From Octopus sinensis (taxonomy: Eukaryota), in NCBI RefSeq assembly GCF_006345805.1, contig NC_043009.1, positions 12,648,001 to 12,712,000 on the forward strand: 64,000 nucleotides of DNA, written 5' to 3'. Below are positions 29,801 through 59,451 of this stretch, one piece after another (positions within the stretch are counted from its first letter, which is position 1; each line of letters opens with the position of its first letter). Position numbers and translations under genes: made by a program. The notes under the pieces are model-generated. The model did not search any database. It saw nothing but the letters and a program-made list of their open reading frames with translations, and was not told the origin of the DNA.

Positions 29801-31980
29801 TTGAAATGTCTTTGTATCTCAGGTGGAGGTGACACTGCTACCTGCTGTGCCAAGTTCAAAACCGAGACTAAAGTGAGCCATGTCAGTACAGGAGGTGGCG
29901 CTAGTCTAGAATTGCTGGAAGGTAAGTCAGCCTGAAGACAGTAAAAGAAATTTCTAGAAATTTACAAGATTTCTTTCACACACACCATTCTCTCCCTCTC
30001 CTTATCTCTCTCTCTCTCTCTTTGGCTTTCTTCCTCTTCTTTCTTTATTCTCTTTCCTTCTTTCTCTCACTTTATCCCTTTACTTTCTCTGTCCATGTCT
30101 CTCTCTCTCTCTCTCTCTCTTTTTGTCATCCATTTGCTCATGACTTAAACTGTTCTTCATATAAGCCCTATATCTAAATTCAGGTAGTAAGCAGGTGATA
30201 CAGGCATAACGATCTTTGGGACATGTATTTTTACAAATACACGTAATTTTAATGAAACTGCTATTCTGAATGTGCACTGGAGTTAAAAACCTGATAAATA
30301 CCAACAGACATAATTGTGACTGAATTATGTTGAGTGAAAGTTAGATTCTTGACTGATTTTGCTATTAAAAGGGAACTTTGGTTTCTTTGGGCTTTTAAAT
30401 TAAAAAAGAGCAAAAACAAAAATGTATTAAAAGGGCAAATTTTGTAGGTATTTTAGTTTTTTACATTTTATGGAATTTAGTTTTATATTGTCAACTTAGA
30501 TAATTTATTGTAAAAGGTAGTGAATTGTTGGGAGTGTTGATTAGCATGTTTTGTGATATCTGTTCTGACTACCTGCACTGGAGTTCAAATCCCACCCAGT
30601 CCAACATAGCCCTTTATCTGTTTGAGCATTGGTAAATAGAGTAACAGTCCAGAAGTGTGGATCTGTGAAATTATTAGATCAGTGGACAAGGTGCTTTGAA
30701 GTATCTTTTTTCCGACTCTGCACATTCTGAGTTCAATTTGTACTCTTGCCCTTGTAAAAAATGGGACAGTGACATTTCTATCTGGAGTTGTATATCTATT
30801 TCTTTACTACCCACAAGGGGCTAACCACAGAGAGGACAATCAAGGACAGACAAACGGATTAAGTTGATTACATCGACCCCAGTGCGTAACTGGTACTTAA
30901 TTTATCGACCCCTAAAGGATGGAGTTGTATATCTGTCTGGTTGGGTGCCTTGCCTGGTGCAACTCTTCCATATCACCTCCCCATCTTCCATTGCAGTCTT
31001 CATATTCTCAGCTTGATATACAATCTTCTTGGTCTTCCAATACCTGCATGGATTTCCAGAAGAATATCGCTTCTCTGATTACCATCACCATGGTAACCGA
31101 GAGATAGTTTCAACAATAGAAAAATCAAAAGAAACACTATTTTCTTTATTAATCTATTAGCATTTAAACTTGCCATATCTGGCCCAAATATTCTACATGT
31201 TTTATGTTCAAGCCAGCCAGATTCATACCCTCACACCTACCTTACAATGTCATTCTAAAGACAAACAATCTCATCAGAAATCTTTAAGCTACAAGATAAT
31301 CCATAATTAATACAAAACAGTGGAGTTAAGAAGAATTTCATTTGACAGAGTGATCTGAATGCTAAAGGGTTAAATAAAAAAGAATTACTGCCACCACCAT
31401 ATTTGCAGTAATTTTTTTTCACTCTTTTTTACTTGTTTCAGTCATTTGTCTGCGGCCATGCTGGAGCACCGCCTTTAGTCGAGCAAATCGACCCCGGGAC
31501 TTATTCTTTGTAAGCCCAGTACTTATTCTATCGGTCTCTTTTGCCGAACCGCTAAGTGACGGGGACGTAAATACACCAGCATCGGTTGTCAAGCAATGCT
31601 AGGGGGACAAACACAAACCCATACACACACATATATATATATATATATATACATATATACGACAGGCTTCTTTCAGTTTCCGTCTACCAAATCCACTCAC
31701 AAGGCATTGGTCGGCCCGGGGCTATAGCAGAAGACACTTGCCCAAGATGCCACGCAGTGGGACTGAACCTGGAACAGTGTGGTTGGTTAGCAAGCTACTT
31801 ACCACACAGCCACTCCTGTAATTTTTTTTTTATTTAACCCTTTAACGAAAGTTAGTCTTAAAGATAAATTCCTGCCACCACCAAATTTGCAGTAAGTGTA
31901 ATTTTGTAATAAAATGCTTGTTTTTCGTCCTTTTTTCAGGGAGAGTGCTTCCAGGTGTCGCTGCTTTGACCACTGCATAG
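334..31980 (+). CDS. PGK: Phosphoglycerate kinase gene, 5'-partial spliced CDS: join(334..384,19346..19498,20651..20795,23380..23483,25054..25173,26797..26911,27488..27667,28827..28903,29623..29723,29823..29921,31940..31980)
   Basis: All introns are GT-AG and the phases are mutually consistent. The translation contains the PGK motifs [73 protein letters not shown] and [16 protein letters not shown], and ends [13 protein letters not shown]. The first coding exon was not found in 1-333. Confidence 0.98.
893..1068 (-). mobile_element. mariner 3' end remnant
   Basis: Minus frame [31 protein letters not shown] resembles a mariner transposase C-terminus, followed by a TIR-like end. Confidence 0.55.
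1090..1612 (+). pseudogene. Helitron RepHel PIF1-helicase fossil (internally deleted, frameshifted)
   Basis: [20 protein letters not shown] (Walker A), then [35 protein letters not shown] and FQGQ-like motifs. Confidence 0.8.
1637..2698. mobile_element. piggyBac-type MITE (TTAA TSD) with a nested mariner derivative
   Basis: TTAA at 1633-1636 and 2699-2702 with CCC/GGG termini; same family as 4282-4678 and 31153-31369. Confidence 0.75.
1747..2629. mobile_element. Non-autonomous mariner built from two inverted 5' ends (long TIRs)
   Basis: tgaggtctgatca...gtatc termini. About 250 bp at 1747-1990 is the inverted copy of 2360-2629. The middle encodes mariner HTH remnants ([13 protein letters not shown]). 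Confidence 0.8.
3349..3990. repeat. Compound (CA)n / CACACACAA / CACTA microsatellite
   Basis: Direct inspection; source of the spurious HT/CV ORFs. Confidence 0.95.
4282..4678. mobile_element. piggyBac-type MITE (TTAA TSD) with a nested small TIR element at 4460-4628
   Basis: TTAA 4278-4281 and 4679-4682; nested element has ~55-bp TIRs tgtcgacgccccca...gggggcgtcgaca. Confidence 0.75.
4941..5310 (-). mobile_element. SINE family A, diverged copy
   Basis: Homology to 6204-6600. Confidence 0.7.
5323..5552 (-). mobile_element. SINE family C (tRNA-derived head), full length, 12-bp TSD
   Basis: A box TGGCAGAAACG and B box GAGTTCAAATTCC on the minus strand; TSD CGTATTAATACC at 5311-5322 and 5553-5564. 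Confidence 0.85.
5915..6188 (-). mobile_element. SINE-like family B with (GAT)n tail
   Basis: Conserved ggttggcgttaggaagggcatccagc core and catgctagcatgg...aaatgatgatg 3' end; at least 10 copies in the window. Confidence 0.85.
6204..6600 (-). mobile_element. SINE family A, full length
   Basis: tRNA-like head ggcgcaggagTGGCTGTGTGG...GGTTCAGTCCC, internal TA/TG microsatellite, (GTAAAAGA)n tail. Confidence 0.9.
7335..8534. repeat. Long compound (TA)/(TG)/(TATG) microsatellite containing a family B 3' tip at 8005-8056
   Basis: Direct inspection. Confidence 0.95.
8535..8885 (-). mobile_element. SINE family A, internally deleted
   Basis: Homology to 6204-6600 with two gaps. Confidence 0.85.
9360..9755 (-). 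mobile_element. Family B element
   Basis: Same core and (GAT)n tail. Confidence 0.85.
10193..10578 (-). mobile_element. Family B element
   Basis: Same core and (GAT)n tail. Confidence 0.85.
11035..11472 (-). mobile_element. SINE family G (tRNA-derived head), tail type 1
   Basis: A box TGGCCCAATGG and B box GGTTTCGATTCC; shared central domain. Confidence 0.75.
11480..12065 (-). mobile_element. mariner 5' half (TIR plus N-terminal HTH remnant)
   Basis: TA|tgaggtgcattc terminus; [45 protein letters not shown]. Confidence 0.85.
13115..13492 (+). mobile_element. Family B element nested in a TTAA-type MITE (~13035-13625)
   Basis: Core and tail; ttaaccct...aaaggttaa flanks. Confidence 0.8.
14498..14807 (-). 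mobile_element. SINE family G, tail type 2
   Basis: Same head and centre as 62885-63262, different 3' end. Confidence 0.8.
15445..15842 (-). mobile_element. SINE family A, full length
   Basis: High similarity to 6204-6600. Confidence 0.9.
16180..16352 (-). mobile_element. Non-autonomous Helitron 5' end
   Basis: A|TCTATATATATAAAG terminus followed by (GTCT)n and ccaatttcattcaaattttacac; no 3' CTAG found. Confidence 0.65.
17425..17841 (-). mobile_element. SINE family A, full length
   Basis: Homology to 6204-6600. Confidence 0.9.
18347..18720 (+). mobile_element. SINE family A
   Basis: Homology to 6204-6600, with one internal deletion. Confidence 0.9.
19346..19498 (+). CDS. PGK: PGK exon 3, [51 protein letters not shown]
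   Basis: tttag acceptor, gtacgt donor, 153 bp. Confidence 0.97.
20081..20300. mobile_element. piggyBac-type MITE, family 2
   Basis: TTAA|ccctttcgttac...gtaacgaaaggg|TTAA; inverted relative at ~21931-22144. Confidence 0.8.
20651..20795 (+). CDS. PGK: PGK exon 4, [48 protein letters not shown]
   Basis: tttacag acceptor, gtaact donor, 145 bp. Confidence 0.97.
20886..21151. mobile_element. Palindromic fold-back MITE
   Basis: Long near-perfect inverted arms attctattgtgtctgggg.../...ccccagacacaatagaat. Confidence 0.75.
22610..22892 (+). mobile_element. SINE family G, tail type 3
   Basis: A box TGGCCTAGTGG, B box GGGTTTGAATCTC; tail ggcccttatgagccaggcatggctcaagaaggaacaaac shared with 61845-62121. 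Confidence 0.8.
23380..23483 (+). CDS. PGK: PGK exon 5, [35 protein letters not shown]
   Basis: tttcag acceptor, gtttgt donor, 104 bp. Confidence 0.97.
24215..24878. mobile_element. hAT-type MITE with a nested family B element (24281-24553) and a hammerhead element (24575-24790)
   Basis: tagttgttcccaacc / ggttgggaattactg termini; 8-bp TSD agttagta/aattagta. Confidence 0.65.
24644..24680 (+). ncRNA. Minimal type I hammerhead motif (palindromic AACGTT stem III), in PGK intron 5, sense strand
   Basis: tgttt-CTGACGA-a-gagc tcc gctc-GAAAC-GTT-aaaca. Confidence 0.7.
25054..25173 (+). CDS. PGK: PGK exon 6, [40 protein letters not shown]
   Basis: ttcag acceptor, gtaagt donor, 120 bp. Confidence 0.97.
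26357..26598 (-). mobile_element. Family B element
   Basis: Core and tail. Confidence 0.85.
26797..26911 (+). CDS. PGK: PGK exon 7, [38 protein letters not shown]
   Basis: ttacag acceptor, gttagc donor, 115 bp. Confidence 0.97.
27070..27335 (+). mobile_element. SINE family A, old and 5'-truncated
   Basis: Diverged homology to family A. Confidence 0.65.
27488..27667 (+). CDS. PGK: PGK exon 8, [14 protein letters not shown]...[12 protein letters not shown]...GIPAGHM
   Basis: ttccag acceptor, gtaagg donor, 180 bp. Confidence 0.97.
27905..28560 (-). mobile_element. Decayed RTE-like LINE ORF fragment
   Basis: Minus frame [40 protein letters not shown] resembles the RTE endonuclease-RT linker. 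Confidence 0.5.
28827..28903 (+). CDS. PGK: PGK exon 9a, [26 protein letters not shown]
   Basis: tttcag acceptor, gtaagt donor, 77 bp. Confidence 0.96.
29153..29444 (-). mobile_element. Family B element, inside the extra PGK intron
   Basis: Core and tail. Confidence 0.85.
29623..29723 (+). CDS. PGK: PGK exon 9b, [34 protein letters not shown]
   Basis: catcag acceptor, gtaagt donor, 101 bp. Confidence 0.96.
29823..29921 (+). CDS. PGK: PGK exon 10, [33 protein letters not shown]
   Basis: tctcag acceptor, gtaagt donor, 99 bp. Confidence 0.97.
30786..30920 (-). mobile_element. SINE family C, 3' fragment
   Basis: Homology to 5323-5552. Confidence 0.75.
31153..31369. mobile_element. piggyBac-type MITE, family 1
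   Basis: TTAA at 31149-31152 and 31370-31373. Confidence 0.7.
31420..31818 (-). mobile_element. SINE family A, in the last PGK intron
   Basis: Homology to 6204-6600. Confidence 0.9.
31940..31980 (+). CDS. PGK: PGK last coding exon, [12 protein letters not shown]
   Basis: ttttttcag acceptor, 41 bp ending in TAG. Confidence 0.96.
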
Positions 31981-34980: not shown

Positions 34981-36145
34981 TTGGGTCATCCCAGAAATAA
35001 TGCGGTTTTTTCAATTGCATGAACTAAAAGTTGGAGGGTGACAGTAAAATTACTACCTGCATCAACTTGCTATAAAAGCAGGTGGTAATTTTACCTTGTG
35101 CTTATTCCTTAGTACAAGTTTTGAAGAGTGCAGTTCGATTGTAACAGTTTTTTCAAAGCTTGTAATAGAAGTGACAAAGGAGCATATTCAGCATATTTTG
35201 CTTTATGAGTTCAATAAGGGCAATAGCACAATGGTAAGTGTGGGGAATATTGATGCAGTATATAGGGATTGGACAATAAGCTTTAAGCCAGTGTCAACAG
35301 TGGTTCCAGAAATTCTGAGCCAGAAACTACAGCCTAGAAGACAAGCCTTGTCCTGGAAGATCTGTACAGCTTGTCAAGGACGTCGTGCAAACCATGGTGG
35401 AACAAAATCCCATCGTGACTGTTGAGGAACTAGCAGAGAAGCTTGGATTTAGTCATCAACCATTCATTGATACCTACGTACCATCGGAAAAGTCAGCAAA
35501 TTGGGTCACTGGTTCCTCACAAACTTTCCCGAATCTAATCACGTGCAGAGAGTGCTCTTCTTTGCTGCCACGTCTCACAAATGAACCTTTTTTTTGGAAT
35601 GCATAGTGACGAGAAATGGGTTCTCTACAAAAATGTCAAGCGCTGAAGACAATGGGTAGAAAAAGGAGAAACATTGGCACCCTTGGCTAAAATAGGTCTG
35701 TTTGGTGGGAAATGAAAGGTTTAACCAAGGAAATCTACTGTGGGCAGCTTGAGCAGCCTAAGTCAGCTAGAAGAAAAACTACCATCTGTGGTTTCAAGAC
35801 GAAATGTTCTCATCAGGATACTGCTCGGCTACATACAGTGAAGATGACATAGGAAAGGCTGGAGCAGTTTGAATGGGAAACGATGCCCTATCCACCATAT
35901 TCACCAGACATTGCTCCTCCATCTCATGATCATTTATTCTGGAGTGTTCAAAATCATTTGAACGGAAAATATATGAATTCTCTAGACATGGTCAGAACAG
36001 TACTGGAAGAGTGTTTTTCATCATGGACAAGTGAATTTTGAAAGAAGGGCCTTGCAAGTCTAGCAGATAGATGGAAGAGCATTGTAGAAAATGAAGGAGA
36101 GTATATTTTTGATTAAAAAACTGCATTATTTATGGGATGACCCTA
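34981..36145 (+). mobile_element. Near-full-length mariner (DD34D-type), pseudogenised
   Basis: TA|ttgggtcatccc...gggatgacccta|TA TIRs; EVTKEHIQHILLYEFNKGN, VEELAEKLG, (G)DEKWVLY and PYSPDIAP motifs with frameshifts. Confidence 0.9.
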
Positions 36146-38937: not shown

Positions 38938-39086
38938 GGCAGGAGTGGCTGTGTGGTAAGTAGCTTGCTAACCAACCACATGGTTCTGGGCATTGGGCAA
39001 GTGTCTTCTGCTATAGCCCCGGGCCAACCAATGCCTTGTGAGTGGATTTGGTAGACGGAAACTGAAAGAAGCCTGTCGTATATATG

Positions 39087-39121
<35 letters not shown>

Positions 39122-39318
39122 GTGTGTGTGTTTGTCCCCCTAGCATTGCTTGACAACCGATGCTGGTGTGTTTACATTCCCGTCACTTAGCGGTTCGGCA
39201 AAAGAGACCGATAGAATAAGTTCTGGGCTTACAAGGAATAAGTCCCGGGGTCGATTTGCTCGACTAAAGGCGGTGCTCCAGCATGGCCGCAGTCAAATGA
39301 CTGAAACAAGTAAAAGAG
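38938..39318 (+). mobile_element. SINE family A
   Basis: Homology to 6204-6600. Confidence 0.9.
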
Positions 39319-39703
39319 TATATCTCCAAATAAATGATATATGTATATTTCAGTTCCAAATGTTTTGAAAATATAGTTATTCCATAACAACAACAACAAC
39401 AATAATAATGATAATAATAATAATAATAATAAAAGAATTAATCTAACAAACAAGATACAATCTGGTGTGCAATTAATTCCATTACTCTAAAACTACAGCA
39501 TCATCGTGAAATTTCCTTTCTCGTTACATTTAATTAGCAGCTTTATATATATAATATATATATTACGGAGATGTACTTGCATGGCAAGTGACTTGATCTG
39601 AGATCGTGTGCTGGAACGAAAACAATTGCAGCGTGGAAGGTGTTTATAAACCATTTAAGAAACACACAAAAACCGTTAGATTCACTTCAACATTTAAATT
39701 TAA

Positions 39704-44218: not shown

Positions 44219-44284
<66 letters not shown>

Positions 44285-44493
44285 TCACATACATATACAT
44301 ACATACATACATACTTACATACATACATACATACATAACACACATATATATGTATAAATACAGTGTACATTTAAACACATAAGAGATGACCATAATAGGA
44401 CATCTGACTCACTAGAAAGAGCAGTTAAACTCCAAACCACTAATAGTTATAATTCTGAAAGGGAATGGAAAATAAAAACATTTACCCTATCTT

Positions 44494-44580
44494 TCCTGGA
44501 CTGTGCATAGTTTCGGCAATCTTTTGCAACTAAAATAAAATAATTTTAATTTACAACTGGCGTTGCCATCTTCAGCAGGA
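44494..44580 (-). ncRNA. Type I hammerhead ribozyme motif, GUC triplet, extended stem II
   Basis: tcctg-CTGAAGA-t-ggcaa...ttgcc-GAAAC-tatgcaca-GTC-cagga. Confidence 0.8.
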
Positions 44581-44669
44581 GGTCAAGGCTCACATATAGA
44601 CACGAGGCGATAAAGAACATGCCTCGTGTTTATATGTTATAATTTTTCAAAATCTTCCGCGCATATATA

Positions 44670-44727
<58 letters not shown>

Positions 44728-44746
44728 ATACATGCATACATACATA

Positions 44747-44806
<60 letters not shown>

Positions 44807-45837: not shown

Positions 45838-45843
45838 TTTATT
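45838..45843 (-). terminator. Candidate polyadenylation signal AATAAA of the minus-strand gene
   Basis: First AATAAA about 163 nt after the stop; it overlaps a genomic A-run, so the evidence is weak. Confidence 0.35.
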
Positions 45844-46005
45844 CCTAGTTTACTATTTCTTCAGCTTTACCTTATGTGGGACTGCGTCACTTTGTGTGAG
45901 TATAAATCTGTGTGCCCGAGGTATGCATTCACTTATACGTGACAGGCTTATTTATGCAAACTATTGCTTCTATTGATATTGATTTCAAACTTTAGACTCC
46001 AGTGT

Positions 46006-46199
46006 TCATCCAGTTCTTGTTTTATCGAGTTTCTTCCATCTGAAACTTTGCTCGTCTGTTACCCCTTGTTCGATATCTAAATCAAATGCTCCATAGCTTT
46101 TGACGCAATGTTGTGCATATGGACCGATTACAAACTGGTATTTATCTTTCTTCCGAGCAGCATTTCTCTTAGCAGTTGCATCTCGTATCATTTTTCTAT
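46006..46199 (-). CDS. Putative secreted protein, terminal coding exon: (Y)RKMIRDATAKRNAARKKDKYQFVIGPYAQHCVKSYGAFDLDIEQGVTDEQSFRWKKLDKTRTG*
   Basis: Polypyrimidine acceptor ttttcgtttctcgttttatag. Phase-1 start matches the 51236 donor. Open to TGA at 46008-46006; AATAAA at 45843-45838. Confidence 0.7.
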
Positions 46200-46368
46200 C
46201 TATAAAACGAGAAACGAAAAGGGTCACACACTAGAAACAACAACAAAAAAAAAACCCTTCTCAAAAAGGTTAGTAACATCCTGATAAAAGGTTTCATCGC
46301 ATTTCCTTACACTTCAAAACTGTATTAAGTAATTCTCGTAGACTTTCTAATATATATATATAGGCACG

Positions 46369-46457
<89 letters not shown>

Positions 46458-46589
46458 GGTACGATGAATAAACTATCGACTAAATTACGCAAGAATGAAT
46501 ATAACCCTGACATCTGATTTTAACAGATACATTTACCAAAATAACATAAAAATATCTCGAAATAGTAAAGAATAAATTTATTCTATAAG

Positions 46590-47040
46590 ATCGTCATTAG
46601 TTTCAACCACGGCCTCCACACGACTTCAGAATCTCCTGCAACTCTTCTGGACGGTCTCCTTGTTTAAGTTGGTGAATGCAGCCATAATTCTTGCCTTCAG
46701 TTCAACTTTGGAGTTACAAGGAGTTTTGTTGGTCACTCGCTCAACTGCATCCACACATAATAATGAAGGAGATTGCAGCCTGGAGAATTAGGTGGCCAGA
46801 TGTTACGGGTGATGTGGTCGCAGAAATTGTCTGCCAGCCATGACTGTGTTCTTCTGCTTGATGCCGAGTTCTGTTGCCAGACAAAGAGTCACCCTCCTGA
46901 CCTCGAGTGGTGCTACCTCCTCCAGGCACTTGATGAAGACCTCCGTGTTGAGTGTGAGGCCATGTGGGAAGATGAATGGAGGCATAACATCGCCATCATT
47001 AGTGATCATTGCAAACACCATGGTGTTGACATGATGTAAT
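46590..47040 (-). mobile_element. maT/DD37D-like (Tc1-mariner) transposase 3' fragment
   Basis: MVFAMITNDGDVMPPFIFPHGLTLNTE..., WPPNSP, ELKARIMAAFTNLNKETV. Confidence 0.8.
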
Positions 47041-49042
47041 GAACTGGAATACCTATGATTTGAATTTCATTAAAATTGCAGATGAGGGTTCTTTCCCACT
47101 TTACACACCCTAAAAAATTCTAATGATGACACATGTATCCCATACTACTGATCTTTATGCTCATATTCCAAAATTCCAGTCTTATGGAACCTGTTAAAAG
47201 GATTTTGCTCCTGAAAAATGGAGGTCATGGAGCTCTAAAATGTGGGAGTTAAGGCCCCCATTGAGGGTGGGTGTCTTAATGTCAACCAGAGAAGTTGAAT
47301 TGTTGAGAATTTTTAAAACTTAGGTCTTATATCTATTGTTTGAATTTCTTTGAAATAGGAAATATATGTTCACCGGGTTTGTAAAAGAGAGCAAAGCTAC
47401 AGGAAACCAAAAGACGAATGATCACAATAAGCAGTCAGCTACCCTACCCTAGTTGTTACCAATTCCAGTGTAGGATTCTTCACCATACAGGTGATAGGCA
47501 CAGCCATAAGATACATTACGGATATATAGCAATTGGAAGGACGTGACCCAACTCAAATAAACATTAACAACTGTGTGACGTGAGGGCTAAGGTGAAATGA
47601 AAGTGTCACCTCTGAAGTTTGCAAATGACCACTATACCGATAGGTAACTGGACAGAATAAATTTACAATCTATAAATGTCTTTGAATAACTGGTCACTCA
47701 TCTGGGAAGGCTTTGAAATCAGTGTTACCATTTGGGGACTATGTGTGACCCAGTGATAATAAAAAAACACTCAAAGGAGGTCTGCAACCAAATAACTTTA
47801 CTCAACACTTTGCAACTGAATCAGTGGAGGCAAAGATGCCTCTCATTTACTTGACAATTTATGCCCCTCTTTGCAGAAATCACAATCAAGTATATCTCAA
47901 AGCTAACTCTTACACTGTTGTACGTTTGAATTACAAATAATGCTCATCTTTTATGTTCGGGTGACCCTACAGCTTCCAAGAGTACAACTGTAATCGTCTT
48001 TGCTTAGATAAAATGACTAAATTGTGGGTGTTAAGTCCCCATGGAGAGGTCTTTCTAACTTCTAAGAAGATGAAATTTTCGAAATATTACTTATTTCTGT
48101 CTAATTTCTATGGTTAAAATTTCATCAACAGCAAAAATATATGAATTTTCATGGGGGTTAAGGCCCTTATGCATAGAATATATTTCCAAATTTCATAAAG
48201 ATCCATTCAGTACTTTTGACCTAGTTTTGGATCATAAAATATGATTAAAATTTGGAAGTTAAGGCCTCCATTAGGGAAACTTAGAATCTTCATGAGAAGT
48301 GGAAACTTTGAGAATATTTCTTGATGTGTGTCAATTAACAATGGTTGAAATTTCATCAACATCAAAAATTTATGAATTTTTATGGGGTTCTGCCCTCTTT
48401 AAGCCATCTGAAATATGCACAAGCAAAAAGATAGATTGATAGATACAACTGAGTGGGCAAGCAAAAGTATGAGACACTGCCTAGTGCTTTTTTTTTATTT
48501 TGATAAGCCTGGTACTTATTCTATCAGTTTCTTCTGGTCAAGTTATGGGGGATGTAAATAAACGAACCCCAGTTGTAAAGCAGTGATGAGGGAGAAACAG
48601 AGACAAAGACACACACATACACTTACATATATACATACATATATATACGAATGATTTTTTTCAGTTTCTGTCTACAAAATACACTCACAAGGCTTTGGTT
48701 GGTCTGAGACTATAGCAGAAGACACATGCCAAGTCACCACACAGTGGGACTGAACCCAGGACCATGTGTTTTGGAACCATGTTTCTTATAACACAGGCAC
48801 ACCTGCACCTATGTATATATGTGTGTGTATGGGTGTATATATGTATGCATGTATATATGTGTATATATATGTGTGCATATTACATGTACATCTATATATA
48901 TACATCTACACGTATACATATACATCTACGTCTATATATACATCTATATATATATATATATGCATGTATTAATAAATTAATTTACTCTGCTATGTATTGA
49001 GTACCTTATTTACTGTGGTTAACCCCGACTCAACCCGGGACC

Positions 49043-49106
<64 letters not shown>

Positions 49107-49972
49107 CTAGCAGTATCGCCCGGCGTTGCTCGGGTTTGTTTCGACCCGCTGGAATTGTAATTTTGAAAAGTAAAAATTTTGTGAAAATTTTTCTGGTCGA
49201 AATACACCGAAAAGTGGCGACACAGCAGTGAAAAAATCGTAAAAAATAGGGATTTTCATAGAAAAAAGCATCTTTTTGATGTAAATAATTTTTGGTGTTA
49301 ACATGGTCCGATTTGAATTTTATGTTCTACGGAAGGAAGAGCAACCCTTCTTCTACCATACTCTCAATTTTGGTCAACTTGCGCCGCAGGGTCTCGGAGG
49401 AGATAGTGTTAGTTGAAGGTTACCATTGTAGGTGCCTGAGTAACAACCTCGCGGATTTACAGATAAATGAATTAATTACTATTTTACAGAATAAAATTAA
49501 ATAATTCTTGAAAATTAATTAATATTAATATTTTTGAACAAAGTAAATAATTTTTAAAACTTAAATAATAATTTTTTTTACACAAACGCGAACGGGGAAA
49601 AGGGGGTGGCGAATTCGATTTACATACCTAAATTTTTTCTTTTTCATGACATTGTAGCAAAATAGTAGTGAATTATATAAATACCAGCAGTACATTTTTT
49701 TTTCTGGGGTATTTTTTTTCAACCTCGTCACATATTTGCCCCTTTCAATTTAAACAAAGTCTTAATTAAGCAATTACGGCAGCTTAGCAATGGTTTCAAT
49801 ACAGGCGTGACATCTGTATCTCAATTGTTCAAAACCCTTCGAATTTTTTCGCACGTGATGATATCATAGTGAAAACTTCAGTTATTTCTGTCTATCACTC
49901 TGTCTGTCTCTTTACACACACTAACAAAAGCACTTCACTTACACACCACACTTTCTGTGTCGCACAACCCAT

Positions 49973-50019
<47 letters not shown>

Positions 50020-50564
50020 GCACACATGTACATCAATGCTTTCGGAGTGAAATGTTAAAATATTGAGTTTTCTCGAATTTTGTCTTAATTGGGGGTGAAA
50101 TTGAAAGAAATATATTATGGCATGAGCGAATGGAGTACTTTGAAAAATCTTAGGTAAATTCTAATTGAAGAAATTGTGTGAGGAGTAAATCGTTATGTAT
50201 TTATTTGTTTCTGTTTGCTGTGTTTTTTTTAATTTTTTGAGTAGTGGTTTAAATACTTTCAGTTTAGTCTTCCTCAAATCACTCTGTCGCTATTTACTTT
50301 CATTTTATTCGTTGCACACTGTGTGTGTGCGTTTGCGTGTGGTGTAAACCAGACTAAGAAAAGCATTTGACACACACACCAGAATGTGAGTTTTCTGTAA
50401 ATTTTGCTTAATTGGAGTTTAAATTTTAAAAACTGGACCTGGCATGACCCGATGCATTCTACTCTTAAAAATGCTAGGTAAATTGTAATTGAAGAAATCC
50501 TATATTGTAGATTTCTATAACTCCCAAAGGGAGGCAGATAAAATCTGCCTTTTATAATAAGAGA
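49107..50564 (-). mobile_element. Complete non-autonomous Helitron inserted in (TA)n
   Basis: A|TCTCTTATTATAAAAG 5' end; CCCG-agcaacgc-CGGG hairpin then CTAG|T 3' end. Confidence 0.8.
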
Positions 50565-50572
50565 TATATATA

Positions 50573-50612
<40 letters not shown>

Positions 50613-50704
50613 TATATATTTACACGTATATATATATACATCTATATATATACATCTGTGCAGATGTATACATATATACACATATATATTATATATACAC
50701 ACAA

Positions 50705-50744
<40 letters not shown>

Positions 50745-51235
50745 ATATGTATGTATGCCTGTATATATGTGAGATAATAGTTTCACATTAAATAGTTTCA
50801 GTATTAAAGTGAAACTATTAAAGTGAAAATATCTGACATTACAATAGAGAGATGTTATTGTTTCACTTTTGACACGTAATACTGAAATAGTGGAGAAGAT
50901 ATGATATTGCTCTGGGCAATATCTTTTGCTTCTTTGGATAAAGTTTCCAGAGATAACCCGATAGGTTTACCATTAATTCCATGAAATATTCACGGGTCCC
51001 GTTAGTCACTAATACTATACATGCAAATAAAGTAAACATCTTTGACATGCTTACAAATACAAGTAAGGCCAACATCTGCATTTTGTGTTATAACACCTCT
51101 CCACCACGCAAAAATATGTATACATTGATACACACGTGTGCACGTCATTCAGACGTACATACATATATATATATTACATATATACATATGTACGTACATT
51201 CTCATATATGCTCTTCTGCATACATATATACTTAC

Positions 51236-51377
51236 ACAAAACGGAAGTCTTGGTATCCTTGCTCATACTGGGCGCTTCCATTCGTTCTTCATTCAGCGGT
51301 TTAGCCTCAGTAACATTCACCGAGAGAGAGAAGATGAATATAAAGGTTAACAAACTGGAGGTGTTCAAGACGTCCAT
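51236..51377 (-). CDS. Putative secreted protein, first coding exon (exon 51394-51236, ATG at 51377): MDVLNTSSLLTFIFIFSLSVNVTEA-KPLNEERMEAPSMSKDTKTSVL
   Basis: Strong acceptor (ttcctttttcttttaagtcctttacag) and donor (TGT|gtaagt). In-frame TAA upstream of the ATG; Kozak context cataATGg. Hydrophobic core LLTFIFIFSLSV followed by VTEA/KP. Phase-1 end. Non-repetitive island between Helitrons. Confidence 0.72.
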
Positions 51378-51467
51378 TATGGGATCCCGTTATTCTGTAA
51401 AGGACTTAAAAGAAAAAGGAATAATTTGTCAATGTTTTAAACAAAACGCAATTATTGTTATTATTTA

Positions 51468-51824
51468 CGAGCAAAACGCCCCGCCGTCCAATGGACGGTG
51501 CTGAGTTGTTAAACATTTAAACCAAATTTTCTCAAAACAATTTGTCCGACCGTCCCATAGGCCTCCCCTTTGAAAAAACACTGATTTAGCCTAAATTTGA
51601 GACACCAGCAAAACTGATGTACGTCTGCGTACAAATGCACGTTCTCACGGCTTTATCGATTGCATTCTCACATGGAATCGACTTTTGTAATTTTTTCAAG
51701 ACTTATATACGCCCTGATACTGTCGGTATCTGCATATCGAATTTGCGCGCAGTCGGATGGAGGATGCCCGAGATCCTAGAAGACACACACACACAGACAG
51801 ACAGAACGGATTTTATATAATAGA
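51468..51824 (-). mobile_element. Short non-autonomous Helitron
   Basis: A|TCTATTATATAAAA 5' end; ccgtcc-att-ggacgg hairpin; CTCG|T variant 3' end. Confidence 0.7.
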
Positions 51825-52250
51825 TATCCAAATTTAAAAGCGATGAGCTGACAGAATAGTTAACACGACGGGTGAAATGCTTAGCAGTATTTTATTCATC
51901 TTTATATTCTGAGTTCAAATTCTTCCGAGGATGACTTTGCCTTTCACTCTTTCGATGTTTTGTGAAATAAGTACCAGTCAAGCACTGGTGTCGATGTAAG
52001 TGACTTAACCCTCCCCCAAAATTTCAGGCCTTGTGCCTATAGTAGAATGGATTATTTGTATCTCAATAAGAGCTGCAACTTCTTGAAAATAAATAAAATA
52101 CCATACATTCATTTGCGTGGTTGGTGCCATGTAAAAACTGGAGAGAACACATGAGATATCGACTTTGTATTTCGACGATGCTTACATCATAAGTCACAGT
52201 TTGTATACCATTAAAACTGAACCGTAGTGTGACGTGCTGGTAGAAAGGAA

Positions 52251-52370
52251 AGCCAGTTTAATTCCAAATAAGTGTTGTAAAGTCAATTTAACTGCAAATG
52301 GTTGTTCTAAAGTCAATTTCATTCCAAATAGTTGTTGTAGAGTCAGTTTAATAGCGACTAGGTGTTGTAA
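52251..52370. repeat. 30-bp minisatellite, 4 diverged units
   Basis: agtcaatttaattccaaatagttgttgtaa-like units in exact 30-bp register. Confidence 0.85.
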
Positions 52371-52594
52371 ATTAGTGCAGCTTACCGAAGCAAGCAGAAG
52401 TAAGAATATATATCTCTTATAAAGGGATTGAGAATAATCGATGTCAATTCAATTGATTTAGTGCAGAGAAAAAGGTTTCAGAATTATAAAATTACTAACT
52501 AGACAACAACAATGTGTGTGCACATCAGCACACACATACAAACACACTCGTATGCAATACAAACACACATCTGTGCCATTACACATGCATATTT

Positions 52595-52771
52595 CGTCTG
52601 TCGCTACGTTCTGAGTTCAAATTCTGCTGAGGTCGACTTTGCCTTTCATCCTTTCGGGGTCGATAAATAAAGTACCAGTTACGCACTGGGGTCGATGTAC
52701 TTGACTTTATCCCTTTGTCTGTGTTTGTTTGTCCCCTCTATCTTTAGCTCCTTGTGGGCAATAAAGAAATA
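52595..52771 (+). mobile_element. SINE family C, 5'-truncated; an older copy lies at ~51850-52045
   Basis: Homology to 5323-5552. Confidence 0.8.
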
Positions 52772-52853
52772 TATACATACACACACACACGCATATATAT
52801 ATATATAATTATATATATATATACACACACTAATATACACACATATATATGCG

Positions 52854-52886
<33 letters not shown>

Positions 52887-53009
52887 TATATATATATGTA
52901 TGTGTGTATAATATATATATATGTTTGTGTGTGAGCATTTTTGCAGATATGCATGTATATGTGCGTATGTATGTAGGCATGCATGTATATATGTATTCAT
53001 GTATGTATC

Positions 53010-53385
53010 TATGATAAAAGTGATGAATGGATGTTTACTGAAGTTCTGTAGAATTCAAGCAAGTTGCTAACAGCTTGAGACAAGACAATTCCAGAGATTT
53101 GAGAGTATGGGAGAATTAATGTAGTGATATATAACGGACGGTCTGGATGTATTTGCCCAATTATTCTGGTTCTGGTGTACCATTTGTAAGAGCGATAGAA
53201 CAATACTTCCTTCGGATAGCATTGTGAATTGATTTAGAAATAATGTTGTGTCTCGTGGGGATAAAGTACTTTGCAGATAATTTTAATCATCTGCTGGTAA
53301 TATTGAAGCTACTTCCAGACTCCACAAGGTGCAATCAAGAATTTCTCTGATAATATAAAGAGACATCTTCATCTCATATATCATC
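53010..53385 (-). mobile_element. R4/Dong-like LINE fragment (zinc-knuckle to RLE region)
   Basis: KLSAKYFIPTRHNIISKSIHNAIRRKYC, with stops and frameshifts around it. Confidence 0.65.
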
Positions 53386-53395
53386 CAGGTATATA

Positions 53396-53426
<31 letters not shown>

Positions 53427-53630
53427 ATATTAGGGAATAAATCCAAACTTACAGGGAAAAATCAGATTTAGGATTGAATCCAATTTTATAGTAAAATATT
53501 ATATTATATTAAATTAGAGACAAAACCACTATTAGGCAAATCAAACAATGAAAAACTTAAGCCAATACATATGATTAATTTATATTATTTAAATATATAA
53601 CAAAATTATTAAAAAAAATATAATTAATAT

Positions 53631-53698
53631 CACACTACGATCGTTTCATGCCTGCTAACAGCTTCAAATTTTTGAGTCGCAGTCATTCATCAGGTGGT
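53631..53698 (-). ncRNA. Type I hammerhead ribozyme motif, GUA triplet
   Basis: cac-CTGATGA-atgactgc...gcaggcat-GAAAC-gatc-GTA-gtg; palindromic stem III ACGATCGT; short 3-bp stem I. Confidence 0.7.
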
Positions 53699-53790
53699 TT
53701 AAATATTTTTCTTGGTGGTTTAAACATTGTTTGATTTGCCTAATAGTGGTTTTGTCTCTAATTTAATATAATATATATATATATATATAT

Positions 53791-54002
53791 ACTCTTTACT
53801 CTTTACTCTTTTACTCTTTTACTTGTTTCAGTCATTTGACTGCGGCCATGCTGGAGCACCGCCTTTAGTCGAGCAAATCGAGCCCAGGACTTATTCTTTG
53901 TAAGTCGGTATCTTTTGCCGAACCGCTAAGTTACGGGGACGTAAACACACCAGCATCTGTTGTCAAGCGATGTTGGGAGGACAAACACAGACACACAAAC
54001 AT

Positions 54003-54033
<31 letters not shown>

Positions 54034-54203
54034 CATATATACGACGGGATTCTTTCAGTTTCCGTCTACCAAATCCACTCACAAGGCTTTGGTCGGCCCG
54101 AGGCTATAGTAGAAGACACTTGACCAAGGTGCCACGCAGTGGGACTGAACCCGGAACCATGTGGTTGGTAAGCAAGCTTTTTAGCACACAGCCACTCCTA
54201 CGC

Positions 54204-54204
<1 letters not shown>
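53791..54204 (-). mobile_element. SINE family A
   Basis: Homology to 6204-6600. Confidence 0.9.
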
Positions 54205-54234
<30 letters not shown>

Positions 54235-54235
54235 C

Positions 54236-54302
<67 letters not shown>

Positions 54303-54307
<5 letters not shown>

Positions 54308-54984
54308 CACGTTATTTATTTATGTAAAGGTTTATTATATATTTCGCAGCGTACGTGCATAATAACTTCTTTATGTTTATCATATCACCACCCCTGCACG
54401 ATGTCTTTAAACTTTTTTCTTTCCTTCGCCATTGCTTCGTTGCCAAATAGTTTTGGCGCCTTTTTCTCCCAGCCTCTCTGATTCCTTCTCTCCCTCTCTC
54501 TCTTGGTCACTGCTTCTTCTCTGATTCCTTCTCTCCCTCTCTCTCTTGGTCACTGCTTCTGTCCTCACCTTCCACCCTCCTTGGTCCCCTCTCTCTCTTA
54601 CCCTCTTGCGACTTGCTGCCTCAGCCATTCTGTTGCTAATCGGCCCCTTGTTCAACATGTGTCTCATCACCGAAAAGGTAATTATTTTTCCACGCTTGCT
54701 GATATTGTTTTTGTGTCTCCTTTTGTCTCAAAGCCGTAGGGCGCCTGTGTCATCCATGTTTTTAACCGTTACTGTCTCCCAAAAAGTTTTTTTCGTTTCA
54801 TGTTCGTCTCTGTTGCGTTGCATTCTTTCCTTCTGTGGCTGGCTGATTCAGAGCGGATCTCAGAATTAAACAGCCGAAATCTGCGATGAGGAATCAGTTT
54901 CTGACTGGTTTTGAATGACCCGTTTGTCTTTTATGTTCGTCCCTTCGTGTATTTCACGTTATTTATTTATGTAACGGTTTATTA

Positions 54985-54985
<1 letters not shown>
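54303..54985 (+). mobile_element. Penelope-like pLTR remnant with ~38-bp direct terminal repeat
   Basis: tatttcacgttatttatttatgtaa(a/c)ggtttattatatat at both ends; (TA)n flanks; decayed hammerhead-like stretch near 54870-54925. Confidence 0.4.
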
Positions 54986-55018
<33 letters not shown>

Positions 55019-55104
55019 CATATATATATACATATGCTTGTATATCTATCTATATATACACATACACGCGCACACTCATGTGCGCCATCCCCCCCGCGCG
55101 CGAA

Positions 55105-55728
55105 AATATTTTAATGGAAGTTTTGTGGCTGTATTTTACCTCTACAATATTTATCTATTTTGAAACTGAAATAAATTCTACCCCCTTTCAGATATATAAA
55201 TATGGAGTACCATATAAGAAATGAGCATTTTGGATGCCTACTTTTTTTTTACATTCAATCAAGGTTCCAAATCTGCCAAAGCCGCTCGGGACATTTGAGC
55301 TCTGTACGAAGAGGGCGCTATTGCCGAAAAAATTGCATACAAATGGTTTGCATGTTTCAGAGAAGAGAAGTTCAATCCCATAGTTTCTCCACATTTAAGA
55401 TGAGCTTTTCATTTCATTGAGGACCGTTTGAATGAACTCGTTCACGAAGATTTGCACCAGTCCATTAGGGAGTTGGCCCGGCTGATAGGATGCTCTCATG
55501 ATTCTGTCGCCTGTCACTTTCACTCTATGGGTAAGGTTCCAAAACTCGGTGCATGGATGCTACGAACTCTTAACGAAAGTGACAAATTCCAGCGCTTCTC
55601 TAGCGCCGTCAGTTTACTCGCTCGACACCAGGATACCCGTGGACACAAACAAAGAGAGATAGAGATAGAGATAGAGATAGAGATAGAGATAGAGATAGAG
55701 ATAGAGATAGAGATAGAGATAGAGATAG

Positions 55729-55759
<31 letters not shown>

Positions 55760-56341
55760 GAGAGAGATTTCTTTACCACATAATTTCATAAGTCGCAAAG
55801 AAACATGATGATTTTATGTTAATATGAAGCTGGTTGAGTCTCAATGGTTGAGTCTCAAAGCAAGCAACTCCTCGATCCAAACCAGAGCTGCATCGACGCA
55901 AGACAGTGATCTGCGTTTGGTGGGGTTGAGAAGGGCTAATCCACAACGAAATGTTTGAAAACAAGTCAATGCAGAGCTTTGAGCTCAGCAAATGCATCGG
56001 CTCAGTTAGGCCATCCAGCTGAATTGAACCAGCGAACGGAACAATGAGCTTCTTCAATGCTCACCTCACGCCGCAAATTTTATGAACAGAATACTATTGA
56101 AGCGCTCAGGTTTTTTTTTTGCTGCTCTTCAAGAGAATGCTCGGTGTTTCGTTCAACAACAACGTGACTCGAAGAAGTTTTCAAGTCAAGATCCAATAAT
56201 TTCTCCTGTTAAAACATTGGCATACTAGGAGAACGTTGCCGTGAAAATATTTGCTTAAATAATATTTTGTTAAAACTGTCATTGAAAAATAAGGATTAAA
56301 TTAAATGAACAAGAAACCCAACTTATTATTTCACAGCCCAA
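55105..56341 (+). mobile_element. mariner fossil (left TIR missing) with an internal (GAGATA)n expansion at 55655-55768
   Basis: MEYHIRNEHF..., LNELVHEDLHQSIRELA, MGKVPKLGAW, ICVWWG; right TIR aacttattatttcacagcccaa. Confidence 0.85.
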
Positions 56342-56404
56342 TGTATGTATGTATGTATGTATGTATGTATGTATGTATGTATGTATGTATGTATGTATGT
56401 ATGT

Positions 56405-57735
56405 TTGTTTCTTCTATTTTTTTAATTATTATAAATCTTCCACTGAGGAGGGAGCCAGCTTCCAACAAAGATACAATCTTTCGGATGTAGTTAGACAAAT
56501 TCACATTTGGAACTTGAGAAACGTCTTGCATATTCTTACTGTTCCACTTACAGATTGCACTTATAATGTACGAATTAGCTAGTCAATTTCTCTTTCTGAA
56601 AATCCCAGTTTATCCAGATTCCCCTTTAAGCATTTACTAACAAGTGTTCCAATTATTATTGGTATGAATATGAATTCATAGTCTGGATATAGAAGCTGGA
56701 GGTTTCGAGGCAGTTGTCCATAGACATCCTCTTTTTCTTTGATTTATATATACAGGGCAGCTAACCTCTATGATGGTATATACCTTTGCCCCTCTATCCC
56801 AAACAACAATATCCGGCCTGTTATGCTTACATCTGACAAGTTTTGATGGGAATATTCCACCAGTGTTCCTTGAATTGGTGTTTATGAATGCATTCCATAA
56901 CAGAGTAATTTTCTAAGTTTATTTCCCCAACAATATCGTTGATAGCCTTAAACATTGAATCGGTCGGATTTTTTCTCACTCTTGTTGGGGATAGTCTGTT
57001 GTTCAACGAAAGCTTCGAGAAAGTATCAAAATATTTTACGAATTGTAATTTTAAAATATTTTCGAGTTGGATGTATTCCGCAGTCTTCGCTACTGAGTCA
57101 GCTAAATTTGGAGACTGACTCGAATTTAACGAAGGCGGGAGCGGTGGTTTGTCTACATTATTTTCTACGCCGCTTCTGGCAGATTTTAACCCATTTTCAG
57201 TGTTTTGAGACGATCAAGGACCAAGTGTTTTTTTTTTTACAATGATGCTTGTTGTCGGAGCTGTTTCACGATGAAGGTATTTAAGTTTGGAAGAGCTTCG
57301 TCCCAGAATTGTTTTAACCGCTTCATGTATCCGATTGAAGGGTCATCTCGGACGTTTTCATAGCACCGAAGTAAATCGTGGTTTAGTTGTCGAGTTCAAG
57401 TAAAGTGAGAAGAGTACTTGCGCCATCTTAAATAACTTACTGGTGAAGTAGTTCTGTTTTCAATGGTTGTGACATTGTTAGTTTCATCTGTGGTGGTGTT
57501 GGTTTCAGCCATAATCGTGCTAGCGAGATTACACGAGGTGTAGATGTACATTTTAAAATCTGTTCAGAAGAGAGCTCGATGGCGAGTAAAAGGTGTTTCT
57601 CTTATTAATTATTGGAGACGTAAACCAGTTACCGATTTAGGCTGAAGAAGTCGGCATATTTCTAGAGGAAGGCGTTCAAAACGGACTTTTTGAACGGTTC
57701 TCTACATCTGCACGTCTGATGTTGACGGCGCCATT
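56405..57735 (-). mobile_element. Internally deleted R4/Dong-like (RLE-clade) LINE flanked on both sides by (CATA)n
   Basis: N-terminal IGYMKRLKQFWDEALPNL..KQLRQQA; C-terminal HWWNIPIKT/CKHNRPDIVVWD..IIEVSCP/KEDVYGQL..IPIIIG; 3' UTR then (CATA)n tail. Confidence 0.8.
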
Positions 57736-57742
57736 ATGTATC

Positions 57743-57776
<34 letters not shown>

Positions 57777-58021
57777 TGTATGTATGTATGTATGTATGTA
57801 TGTATGTATGTATGTATGTTTGTATGTTTGTATGTATGTATGTATGTATGTATGTTTGTATGTATGTATGTATGTATGTATGTATGCATGCATGTATGTA
57901 TGTATGTATGTGTGTGTGTATGTATGTATGTATGTATGTATGTATGTATGTATGTATGTATGTATGTTTGTATGTATGTATGTATGTGTGTATGCATGTA
58001 TGTATGTATGTATGTATGTAT
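57736..58021. repeat. (TATG)n microsatellite
   Basis: Direct inspection; a further tract lies at 56341-56404. Confidence 0.95.
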
Positions 58022-58210
58022 GTATTCAGTTTATTTCAAGATTTCTTACCAATAGAGAAAGAACCGGTTTCTAACCTAGATCCAAGGTTCCTTCATTGGA
58101 ATTTCGACCACAACAGGGTATTTTTGTTTGTATATATGTATGTATGAATCTATGTGCGTAAGTATGTATGAATGTATGTATGTATTATGTAGAGAGAAAC
58201 AGAACGGGAC

Positions 58211-58270
<60 letters not shown>

Positions 58271-58394
58271 TGAGAGAGAGGTTCACAAAAGCAGTTAAAT
58301 ACGTAAAGCACAAAAGAAGAAAGAATTTCTCGTAGAACAGGTGTAATAGTGACAAAAGTAAATTTAGGTTGAAAACGAAGCTGGTCTCATTTAC

Positions 58395-58481
58395 CTGTTG
58401 ATATCTGCAGGAATGGAAAGAAGTAGACCAGGTAACAATAGCCGAAGTTGATGCTTTCAAAAAGTTTGGCGAATCTTATCT
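58395..58481 (-). other. Putative non-coding first exon of the minus-strand secreted-protein gene
   Basis: CAG|gtaaat donor at 58394. No ATG in the exon. Begins about 27 nt downstream of a TATAAAAG box. The TSS position is an estimate. Confidence 0.5.
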
Positions 58482-58500
58482 GGTCCGCTAATAAAGCCTG

Positions 58501-58508
58501 CTTTTATA
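58501..58508 (-). promoter_or_regulatory. TATA box (TATAAAAG) of the putative minus-strand gene
   Basis: Exact TATAWAAR consensus about 27 nt upstream of an initiator-like CCAGAT and a donor-terminated exon. Confidence 0.45.
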
Positions 58509-58851
58509 AAACAAACGAGTTATGTGACCAGAATCATAAAGCCGGTTATTTTACCCTCCTTTTTATCACACATTCGTTTTGCTGCTTTTTATCACAGATT
58601 CATAAAGTAATATCGAATGACCAACTCTTTAAGTATAACTTCTCACCTTTCTTTCCTCCTTCTTTCTCATTCTATCTCGCTCACTTTCTTTCTTTCTTTC
58701 TTTCTTTCTTTCCCTTCTGTTTCTCTCCTTCATTTCCTCTCTTTCCCAAATCAATCGTTCTTTAAAATACTCCCCCAACATAAACATATTTATATAAAGA
58801 CGCACGACGAAATGTATACTTACTGCTTTTTTTTTTGAAAACAAACATGTA

Positions 58852-59025
58852 CGTAGGAGTGGCTGTATGGTAAGTAGCTTGCTTACCAACCACATGGTTC
58901 TGGGTTTAGTCCCACTGCGTGGCACCTTGGGCAAGTGTCTCTTACTATAGCCTCGGGCCAACCAAAGACTTGCGAGTGGATTTGATAGACGGAAGCTGAA
59001 AGAAGACCGTCGTATATATAATATA

Positions 59026-59057
<32 letters not shown>

Positions 59058-59258
59058 GTTTGTGTATATGTTTGTCCCCCAACATCGCTTGATAACCGAT
59101 GCTGGTGTGTTTACGTCCCCGTAACTTAGCGGTTCGGCAAAAGAGACCGATAGAATACGTACTAGGATTACAAAGTATAAGTCTTGGGGTCGATTCGTTC
59201 GACTAAAAGCGGTGCTCCAGCATGGCCACAGTCAAATGACTGAAAGAGGTAAAAGAGA
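58852..59258 (+). mobile_element. SINE family A
   Basis: Homology to 6204-6600. Confidence 0.9.
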
Positions 59259-59451
59259 AAGAGTATATACATTTGTGTGTATACAGATATATGTATTTTT
59301 AAAGGGGAACATAAACATTCCGATTAGGATCCCTATAATCCCTACCGCACACTTTCCCTCTCTCTCACTTCTCTCTCATATTCCCCATCGCTCTCGCATA
59401 CACTGAACACAACGCAATTTACCTACACATGCACGCACGCTCGCTTGCGCG

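Follow-up and report, generated by a model that had tools for sequence, protein, structure and literature searches.

The window analysed here is a stretch of 64,000 nucleotides from Octopus sinensis chromosome CM016871.1 (GCA_006345805.1, ~12,648,001-12,712,000), and the element under study is a candidate gene for a small secreted pro-peptide on its minus strand (CM016871.1 ~12,693,838-12,706,508). The two coding exons of this gene, referred to as exons 2 and 3 (Table 1), splice into an open reading frame (ORF) of 111 amino acids (aa), and translation across the phase 1 intron into the phase-matched terminal exon gave exactly the product expected from the original prediction, which had been made from the DNA letters only. 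Exon 2 follows a pyrimidine-rich acceptor (tttacAG/AATAAC, the slash marking the junction here and below); another AG is located 11 nt upstream, so that the exact 5' edge of this exon is uncertain. An in-frame TAA is found five codons 5' of the ATG, whose Kozak context displays A at -3 and G at +4. Acceptor, upstream stop and start codon were thus all read at the places where they had been announced. The donor of exon 2 (TTGT/GTAAGT, phase 1) is joined to an exon 3 acceptor (ttttatAG/AT, i.e. TTTTATAG/AT, at 46199) which is among only 22 strong acceptor-like AG sites on the minus strand of the window. The chance of obtaining 111 stop-free codons from base composition was estimated at P ~4e-4. 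The AATAAA motif that had been proposed to close the gene is present, 163 nt past the stop codon; it therefore lies outside the interval 46006-58508 and not at its end. A perfect 7+7 palindrome (CCGTCCA-T-TGGACGG, 51484-51498), followed by the G-rich string CGGGGCG, was observed in AT-rich surroundings ~110 nt upstream of the exon 2 ATG.

Protein searches were run on 5.8 billion non-redundant proteins and, with a profile, on all 1.84 billion cluster representatives of a collection of ~15 billion proteins. They yielded a sole homologue, UniProt A0A0L8FXX0 (A0A0L8FXX0_OCTBM), an uncharacterised 101-aa protein of O. bimaculoides. It matched with 55% identity over 101 residues, i.e. 91% of the query (E 4e-22 against the 5.8 billion sequences), and was alone returned by the profile search (E 3.6e-54 against the family profile). 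When this protein was compared with the window by tblastn, exon 2 (E 1.6e-20, 36 identical residues out of 47) and exon 3 (E 4e-6) were recovered on the right strand, in the right order and in the right frame, with no other match. The alignment has no gap at the point where exon 2 meets exon 3, and canonical splice sites are positioned exactly where the homology switches from one exon to the other; this supports the splice and indicates that no coding exon is missing. The homology check, in both its BLASTP- and tBLASTn-type forms, therefore led to A0A0L8FXX0 and from there back onto both exons. Lineage restriction, as proposed earlier, was in agreement with these data (one homologue, from Octopus, among ~15 billion proteins), whereas the view of an unrecognised family has to be qualified: no described family was matched, but the protein is not wholly unseen, A0A0L8FXX0 being homologous. 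The literature searched yielded nothing relevant on the peptide motif, on A0A0L8FXX0 or among surveys of octopus peptides. No paralogue or tandem copy of the gene was detected in the 64-kb window, nor in the two other octopus loci compared (L001 from O. bimaculoides and L002 from O. sinensis, described below).

The two proteins share their general layout. Both start at Met and both end with Gly followed by a stop codon. Rule-based inspection of the N-terminus revealed a signal-peptide-like segment with a 12-residue hydrophobic core, LLTFIFIFSLSV in the window protein and LVTFIFIYSLSV in A0A0L8FXX0, the predicted cut TEA/KP being preceded by Thr at -3 and Ala at -1. Core, Thr and Ala are kept in A0A0L8FXX0, which is consistent with the signal peptide initially suggested. 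A predicted pro-region follows (PLNEERMEAP...KDTKTS in both); it is basic (net +4 to +5) and ends at the conserved KR58-59, RK49-50 being conserved as well. The putative mature peptide counts 52 residues in the window protein and 42 in A0A0L8FXX0, is mildly cationic (net +3 and +4, respectively) and carries one Cys and a C-terminal Gly, both announced beforehand and both conserved. RK49-50, KR58-59, NAA, FVIGP, Cys and SFR remain in register amid diverged sequence. As for the four dibasic sites initially listed, RK49-50 and KR58-59 were found in both proteins, whereas RKK63-65 and KK103-104 were not conserved. RKK63-65 and a nine-residue insertion (WKKLDKTRT) before the final Gly are specific to the window protein; a Gly before KR58-59 and KK at 80-81 are specific to A0A0L8FXX0.

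Conservation between the two proteins is uneven. Identity amounts to 72% in the signal peptide (residues 1-25) and 71% in the pro-region (26-59), falls to 45% in residues 60-79 and to 19% in the last 32 residues (80-111); it reaches 77% for exon 2 as a whole (1-47), and residues 27-47 form the best-conserved segment after the signal. Noncoding DNA of the phosphoglycerate kinase (PGK) locus, 89.4% identical between O. sinensis and O. bimaculoides over 17,960 bp (L001 against the window), was used as a neutral yardstick. Neutral simulation at that divergence led to an expected amino-acid identity of ~77% in both exons, with a frame that stays open in ~20% of the trials. An identity of 19% or less in the tail was obtained in none of 2000 neutral simulations, even at 25% divergence, and the step from 71-72% in the prepro part to 19-45% in the mature part is incompatible with uniform neutral drift. 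A frameshift was considered as the cause of the diverged tail and rejected, the A0A0L8FXX0 tail matching no other reading frame of exon 3. Such contrasting rates inside a stretch of 111 codons imply that some part of it is under selection, and with a divergence larger than the species split allows, the two genes may be paralogues. One of two readings is that they are indeed paralogues whose split predates that of the species, purifying selection having held the prepro part together with RKxI..A..KRNAA, FVIGP, Cys, SFR and the Gly-stop end; the other makes them orthologues in which the mature part evolved far faster than neutral. Under either reading selection must have acted somewhere in the gene, and this is our main argument for an ORF that still functions or did so until recently.

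The reading we favour, with a probability of about 0.55, is that the window holds a real, unannotated gene with two coding exons for a small secreted pro-peptide, belonging to an octopus-restricted orphan family of which A0A0L8FXX0 is the only catalogued member. Several observations weigh against it. The exact ORF is absent from the collection of ~15 billion proteins, as is any transcript-derived (Logan) homologue, though Logan octopus PGK sequences are present there, and no homologue exists among the O. sinensis, O. vulgaris or O. bimaculoides RefSeq proteins in the database. A0A0L8FXX0 is itself an unreviewed prediction and, should it be the orthologue, the 77% identity of exon 2 is just what neutrality predicts and is uninformative on constraint. 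At the protein level, the signal peptide lacks a positive charge in its n-region, Pfam gave no match at E values up to 10, PDB sequences gave none either, and AlphaFold2 gave low-confidence models (pLDDT 63 for exon 3 and 57 for A0A0L8FXX0) in which only helices were seen, at the signal peptide and spanning the cleavage region.

If this secreted pro-peptide gene is real, its product would be processed in the following way. The N-terminal 25 residues would act as a signal peptide cleaved after TEA. The 34-residue pro-region would then be removed by a furin- or prohormone-convertase-type protease at Lys58-Arg59, possibly at Arg49-Lys50 too, and a mildly cationic C-terminal peptide of ~52 residues (42 in A0A0L8FXX0), with FVIGP and one Cys, would be released. 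The single Cys could give a disulphide-linked dimer and the terminal Gly could serve as an amide donor.

The 5' part of the gene is less certain than its coding part. The non-coding first exon of the original prediction could be traced in all its elements: TATAAAAG, together with which an ATG-free stretch of 114 nt extends to CAG/GTAAAT, the last exon base being 58395. The exon as such is plausible but uncorroborated. Its donor scores 8.15 bits with a rough donor matrix, a value attained by 9 of the 707 GT sites from exon 2 to the window end, and eight rival donors between 51395 and 64000 (53951, 54569, 54602, 56065, 58647, 61564, 61919 and 63769) score as well or better. That the coding part is right and exon 1 wrong, transcription starting just upstream of exon 2 or another upstream exon being used, has in our opinion only slightly less than an even chance. 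Besides the rival donors, 139 TATA-like strings are scattered over the 12.6 kb upstream of exon 2, an AT-rich and microsatellite-rich DNA in which such strings are very common; 58508-58395 is without independent support; and the A/T-rich TAAATAATAACAATAA, ~75-90 nt before the ATG, may mark a start near exon 2. On the other hand, the pyrimidine-rich acceptor 17 nt before the ATG suggests that some upstream exon exists, and TATAAAAG is the sole TATAWAWR between 51395 and 64000 that combines an ATG-free stretch with an equally good donor within 60-300 nt. The proposed exon also lies in unique sequence, being single-copy in the window.

Another possible explanation is that the locus is not a functional coding gene at all. 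It would then harbour a long noncoding RNA, an ORF in decay or of very recent origin, or no transcript at all, and the A0A0L8FXX0 match would reflect shared non-functional ancestry combined with an over-eager gene prediction in O. bimaculoides. The absence from the Octopus protein sets and from transcript-derived ORFs reported above would be accounted for in this manner, as would a family of two members only, the neutral-like identity of exon 2 in the case of orthologues and the lack of a confident fold. We nevertheless consider it unlikely. Only ~20% of such ORFs stay open at species-level neutral divergence; start, stop, junction phase, signal features and five short motifs have remained in register, while the tail diverged far beyond neutral without a frameshift; and the canonical splice sites coincide with the exact place where the homology changes exon.

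A neuropeptide or peptide-hormone precursor of the classical type, expressed by neurons or neuroendocrine cells and processed at dibasic sites, appears quite improbable: the signal-peptide-like N-terminus, the conserved RK49-50 and KR58-59 and the C-terminal Gly fit it, as do the Gly preceding KR58-59 in A0A0L8FXX0 (LIQRALG-KR, an amidation motif) and the good conservation of residues 27-47, but only half of the four dibasic sites are conserved, the window protein lacks the Gly before KR, no Pfam family is similar, and conservation is lowest in the long C-terminal peptide (19-45%), the opposite of a classical conserved neuropeptide. The neuropeptide-type detail of the original prediction was not confirmed. 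The bioactive product of such a precursor would be either an amidated C-terminal peptide or the conserved (K/V)PLNEERMEAPxMxKDTKTSxL between signal peptide and RK49-50. The motifs were not found in the searchable part of the supplements of one molluscan neuropeptide survey (PMC6425005), and the protein has no homologue outside Octopus, whereas most molluscan neuropeptide families are, according to that survey, widely conserved.

Table 1. Features of the window and their positions (minus-strand features are read from the higher to the lower coordinate)
Feature	Position in window	Strand	Remarks
Putative TATA box TATAAAAG	58501..58508	-	read directly; presumed function
Putative non-coding exon 1	58395..58478	-	start guessed ~30 nt after the TATA box; donor CAG/GTAAAT after 58395
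Putative intron 1	51395..58394	-	7.0 kb; real only if exon 1 is real
Exon 2	51236..51394	-	17 nt of 5' untranslated region (UTR), ATG at 51377, codons 1-47 and first base of codon 48; putative signal peptide (51377-51303) and most of the pro-region
Intron 2	46200..51235	-	5.0 kb, phase 1, GTAAGT...TTTTATAG
Exon 3, coding part	46006..46199	-	codons 48-111; stop TGA at 46008-46006
Conserved RK49-50	46197-46192	-	in exon 3
Conserved KR58-59	46170-46165	-	in exon 3
FVIGP, Cys79, terminal Gly		-	further conserved features of exon 3
Probable 3' UTR	45838..46005	-	ends at the first AATAAA (45843-45838); AATAAG at 45952-45947
PGK gene, most of it	326-31980	+	coding exon starts near 326, 19344, 20640, 23377, 25049, 26798, 27482, 28824, 29624, 29870
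SINE-like repeat, ~400 bp	6187-6603, 15433-15851, 17420-17860, 31424-31818, 38939-39320, 53803-54215, 58838-59274	both	partial copies near 48.3-48.9 kb and 59.5-59.7 kb
Decayed mariner/Mos1-type transposase remnant	35048-35422	+	Pfam HTH_48, E 2e-7
Decayed mariner/Mos1-type transposase remnant	11615-12007	-	Pfam HTH_48, E 1e-4
Long microsatellites	57735-58025, 44222-44804, 50564-50756, 52793-52930, 54239-54305, 55655-55768, 58191-58280		e.g. (TATG)73, (AT)n, (AGAGAT)19, (AG)35

The candidate gene and the PGK gene are arranged tail-to-tail, the former lying ~14 kb from the PGK stop codon. PGK exons were located by tblastn on the plus strand from 326 to ~29926, the last coding exon ending at 31977 and being followed by the stop codon. 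They are 100% identical to residues 21-403 of O. sinensis XP_029644164, O. bimaculoides PGK differing at 15 of those positions. The first coding exon of PGK is situated upstream of the window, and its first intron inside the window extends over ~19 kb. Window positions 1-41980 correspond with 100% identity to positions 20911-62890 of an O. sinensis CM016871.1 locus (L002), window position 1 being located at ~12,648,001; no further protein-coding gene is indexed in the 62.9 kb of this locus, which covers window 1-41,980, the peptide gene being outside it. The syntenic region of O. bimaculoides (L001, CM046613.1) displays 86-92% identity in alignable noncoding DNA and is more compact downstream of PGK. 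It contains no match to the peptide, over a sequence that ends ~10 kb past PGK and is colinear with the window only to ~38.7 kb. The adjacency of PGK provides a fixed landmark that simplifies orthologue tracing across cephalopods.

The exons had been described as non-repetitive islands in a sea of transposable elements. The islands were confirmed: compared with ~140 kb of octopus DNA, none of the three exons matched a repeat, and all are single-copy in the window; their derivation from a repeat was thus ruled out for the sequence compared. The surrounding sea was shown only in part, ~22% of the region 44-60.5 kb matching interspersed repeats in the same comparison, with many microsatellites besides. 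SINE-like (short interspersed element) copies occur in putative intron 1 at ~53.8-54.2 kb, along with decayed transposon ORFs and microsatellites, among them (TATG)73 at 57735-58025. The SINE-like copies are 84-93% identical to one another, give up to 22 matches in the ~140 kb and translate to a recurring pseudo-ORF; a tRNA-like head was searched for with ARAGORN and none was found. Fragments that look similar to the mariner/Mos1-type remnants of Table 1 occur in the introns of the peptide gene (55404-55739 and 46803-47021) and had no Pfam match. On both strands, the long microsatellites give rise to long spurious ORFs with a high content of Tyr, Ile, Cys, Met and Val. An Rfam search and a tRNA scan returned nothing.

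The gene remains a candidate and its immediate importance is modest. If expressed, it would enlarge the octopus gene set by a lineage-restricted secreted peptide that has escaped annotation, and would demonstrate that cephalopod annotations overlook short spliced ORFs. A stable prepro part combined with a fast-changing mature peptide is a signature of molecules facing prey, microbes or mates, and such a molecule would be of pharmacological as well as evolutionary interest.

The genomic position of the candidate has a parallel in Argonauta hians, where Ahia01_000436300 (P0130, 174 aa; L003 25771-29156 in BAAFZT010000020.1, minus strand) is the immediate downstream neighbour of PGK, in tail-to-tail orientation. 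Likewise an orphan, without homologue in the database, it has a signal-peptide-like start (MCRIMVFLSVAVFLLIASAPTNA/DL...) and a first coding exon that ends in phase 1. However, it is longer and carries 8 Cys after the signal peptide, and its comparison with the octopus protein gave no significant similarity (hhalign probability 0.3%; nothing by tblastn). As the Argonauta counterpart it was consequently set aside, homology not being established and the protein looking like an unrelated orphan. Immediately behind the signal region the two proteins show EREEVPS (Argonauta) and EERMEAPS (octopus), a similarity that is not significant.

Molluscan neuropeptide and prohormone precursors (surveyed in PMC6425005) are comparable to the octopus protein, a small and putatively secreted precursor that has dibasic sites, may carry an amidation signal and may be preceded by a non-coding 5' exon. 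The octopus protein differs from them by its lack of homology to a known family, its restriction to Octopus and its poorly conserved putative mature peptide. A stable secretory and pro cassette attached to a fast-diverging mature part resembles, by analogy, the pattern of exocrine, defence or reproductive peptides more than that of conserved neuropeptides.

Frog-skin dermaseptin-type antimicrobial peptide (AMP) precursors and cone-snail conotoxin superfamilies combine a conserved prepro part with a hypervariable mature peptide. The octopus peptide differs from both: it has no sequence similarity to them, one Cys only instead of a multi-Cys framework, and a pro-region that is basic and not acidic; its family has two known members in the protein collections, with no tandem array in 64 kb and no visible expansion, whereas toxin/AMP-like families are multigenic and often arranged in tandem. 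By analogy, the window gene and A0A0L8FXX0 might be the first visible pair from a family that is specific to octopuses, with a conserved signal/pro cassette and a rapidly diversifying mature peptide, a cephalopod analogue of the conotoxin/dermaseptin-type families, acting in saliva or venom, in skin or egg defence or in reproduction, and largely missed by annotation on account of short and lineage-restricted ORFs; this extension is speculative and, taken as a whole, we regard it as doubtful. The likeness on which it draws comprises a predicted signal peptide, a pro-piece with Lys-Arg at its end, a putative mature peptide that is variable and mildly cationic, a C-terminal Gly as possible amide donor and, as in toxin/AMP-like families, an identity that is high in the prepro part and drops sharply beyond it.

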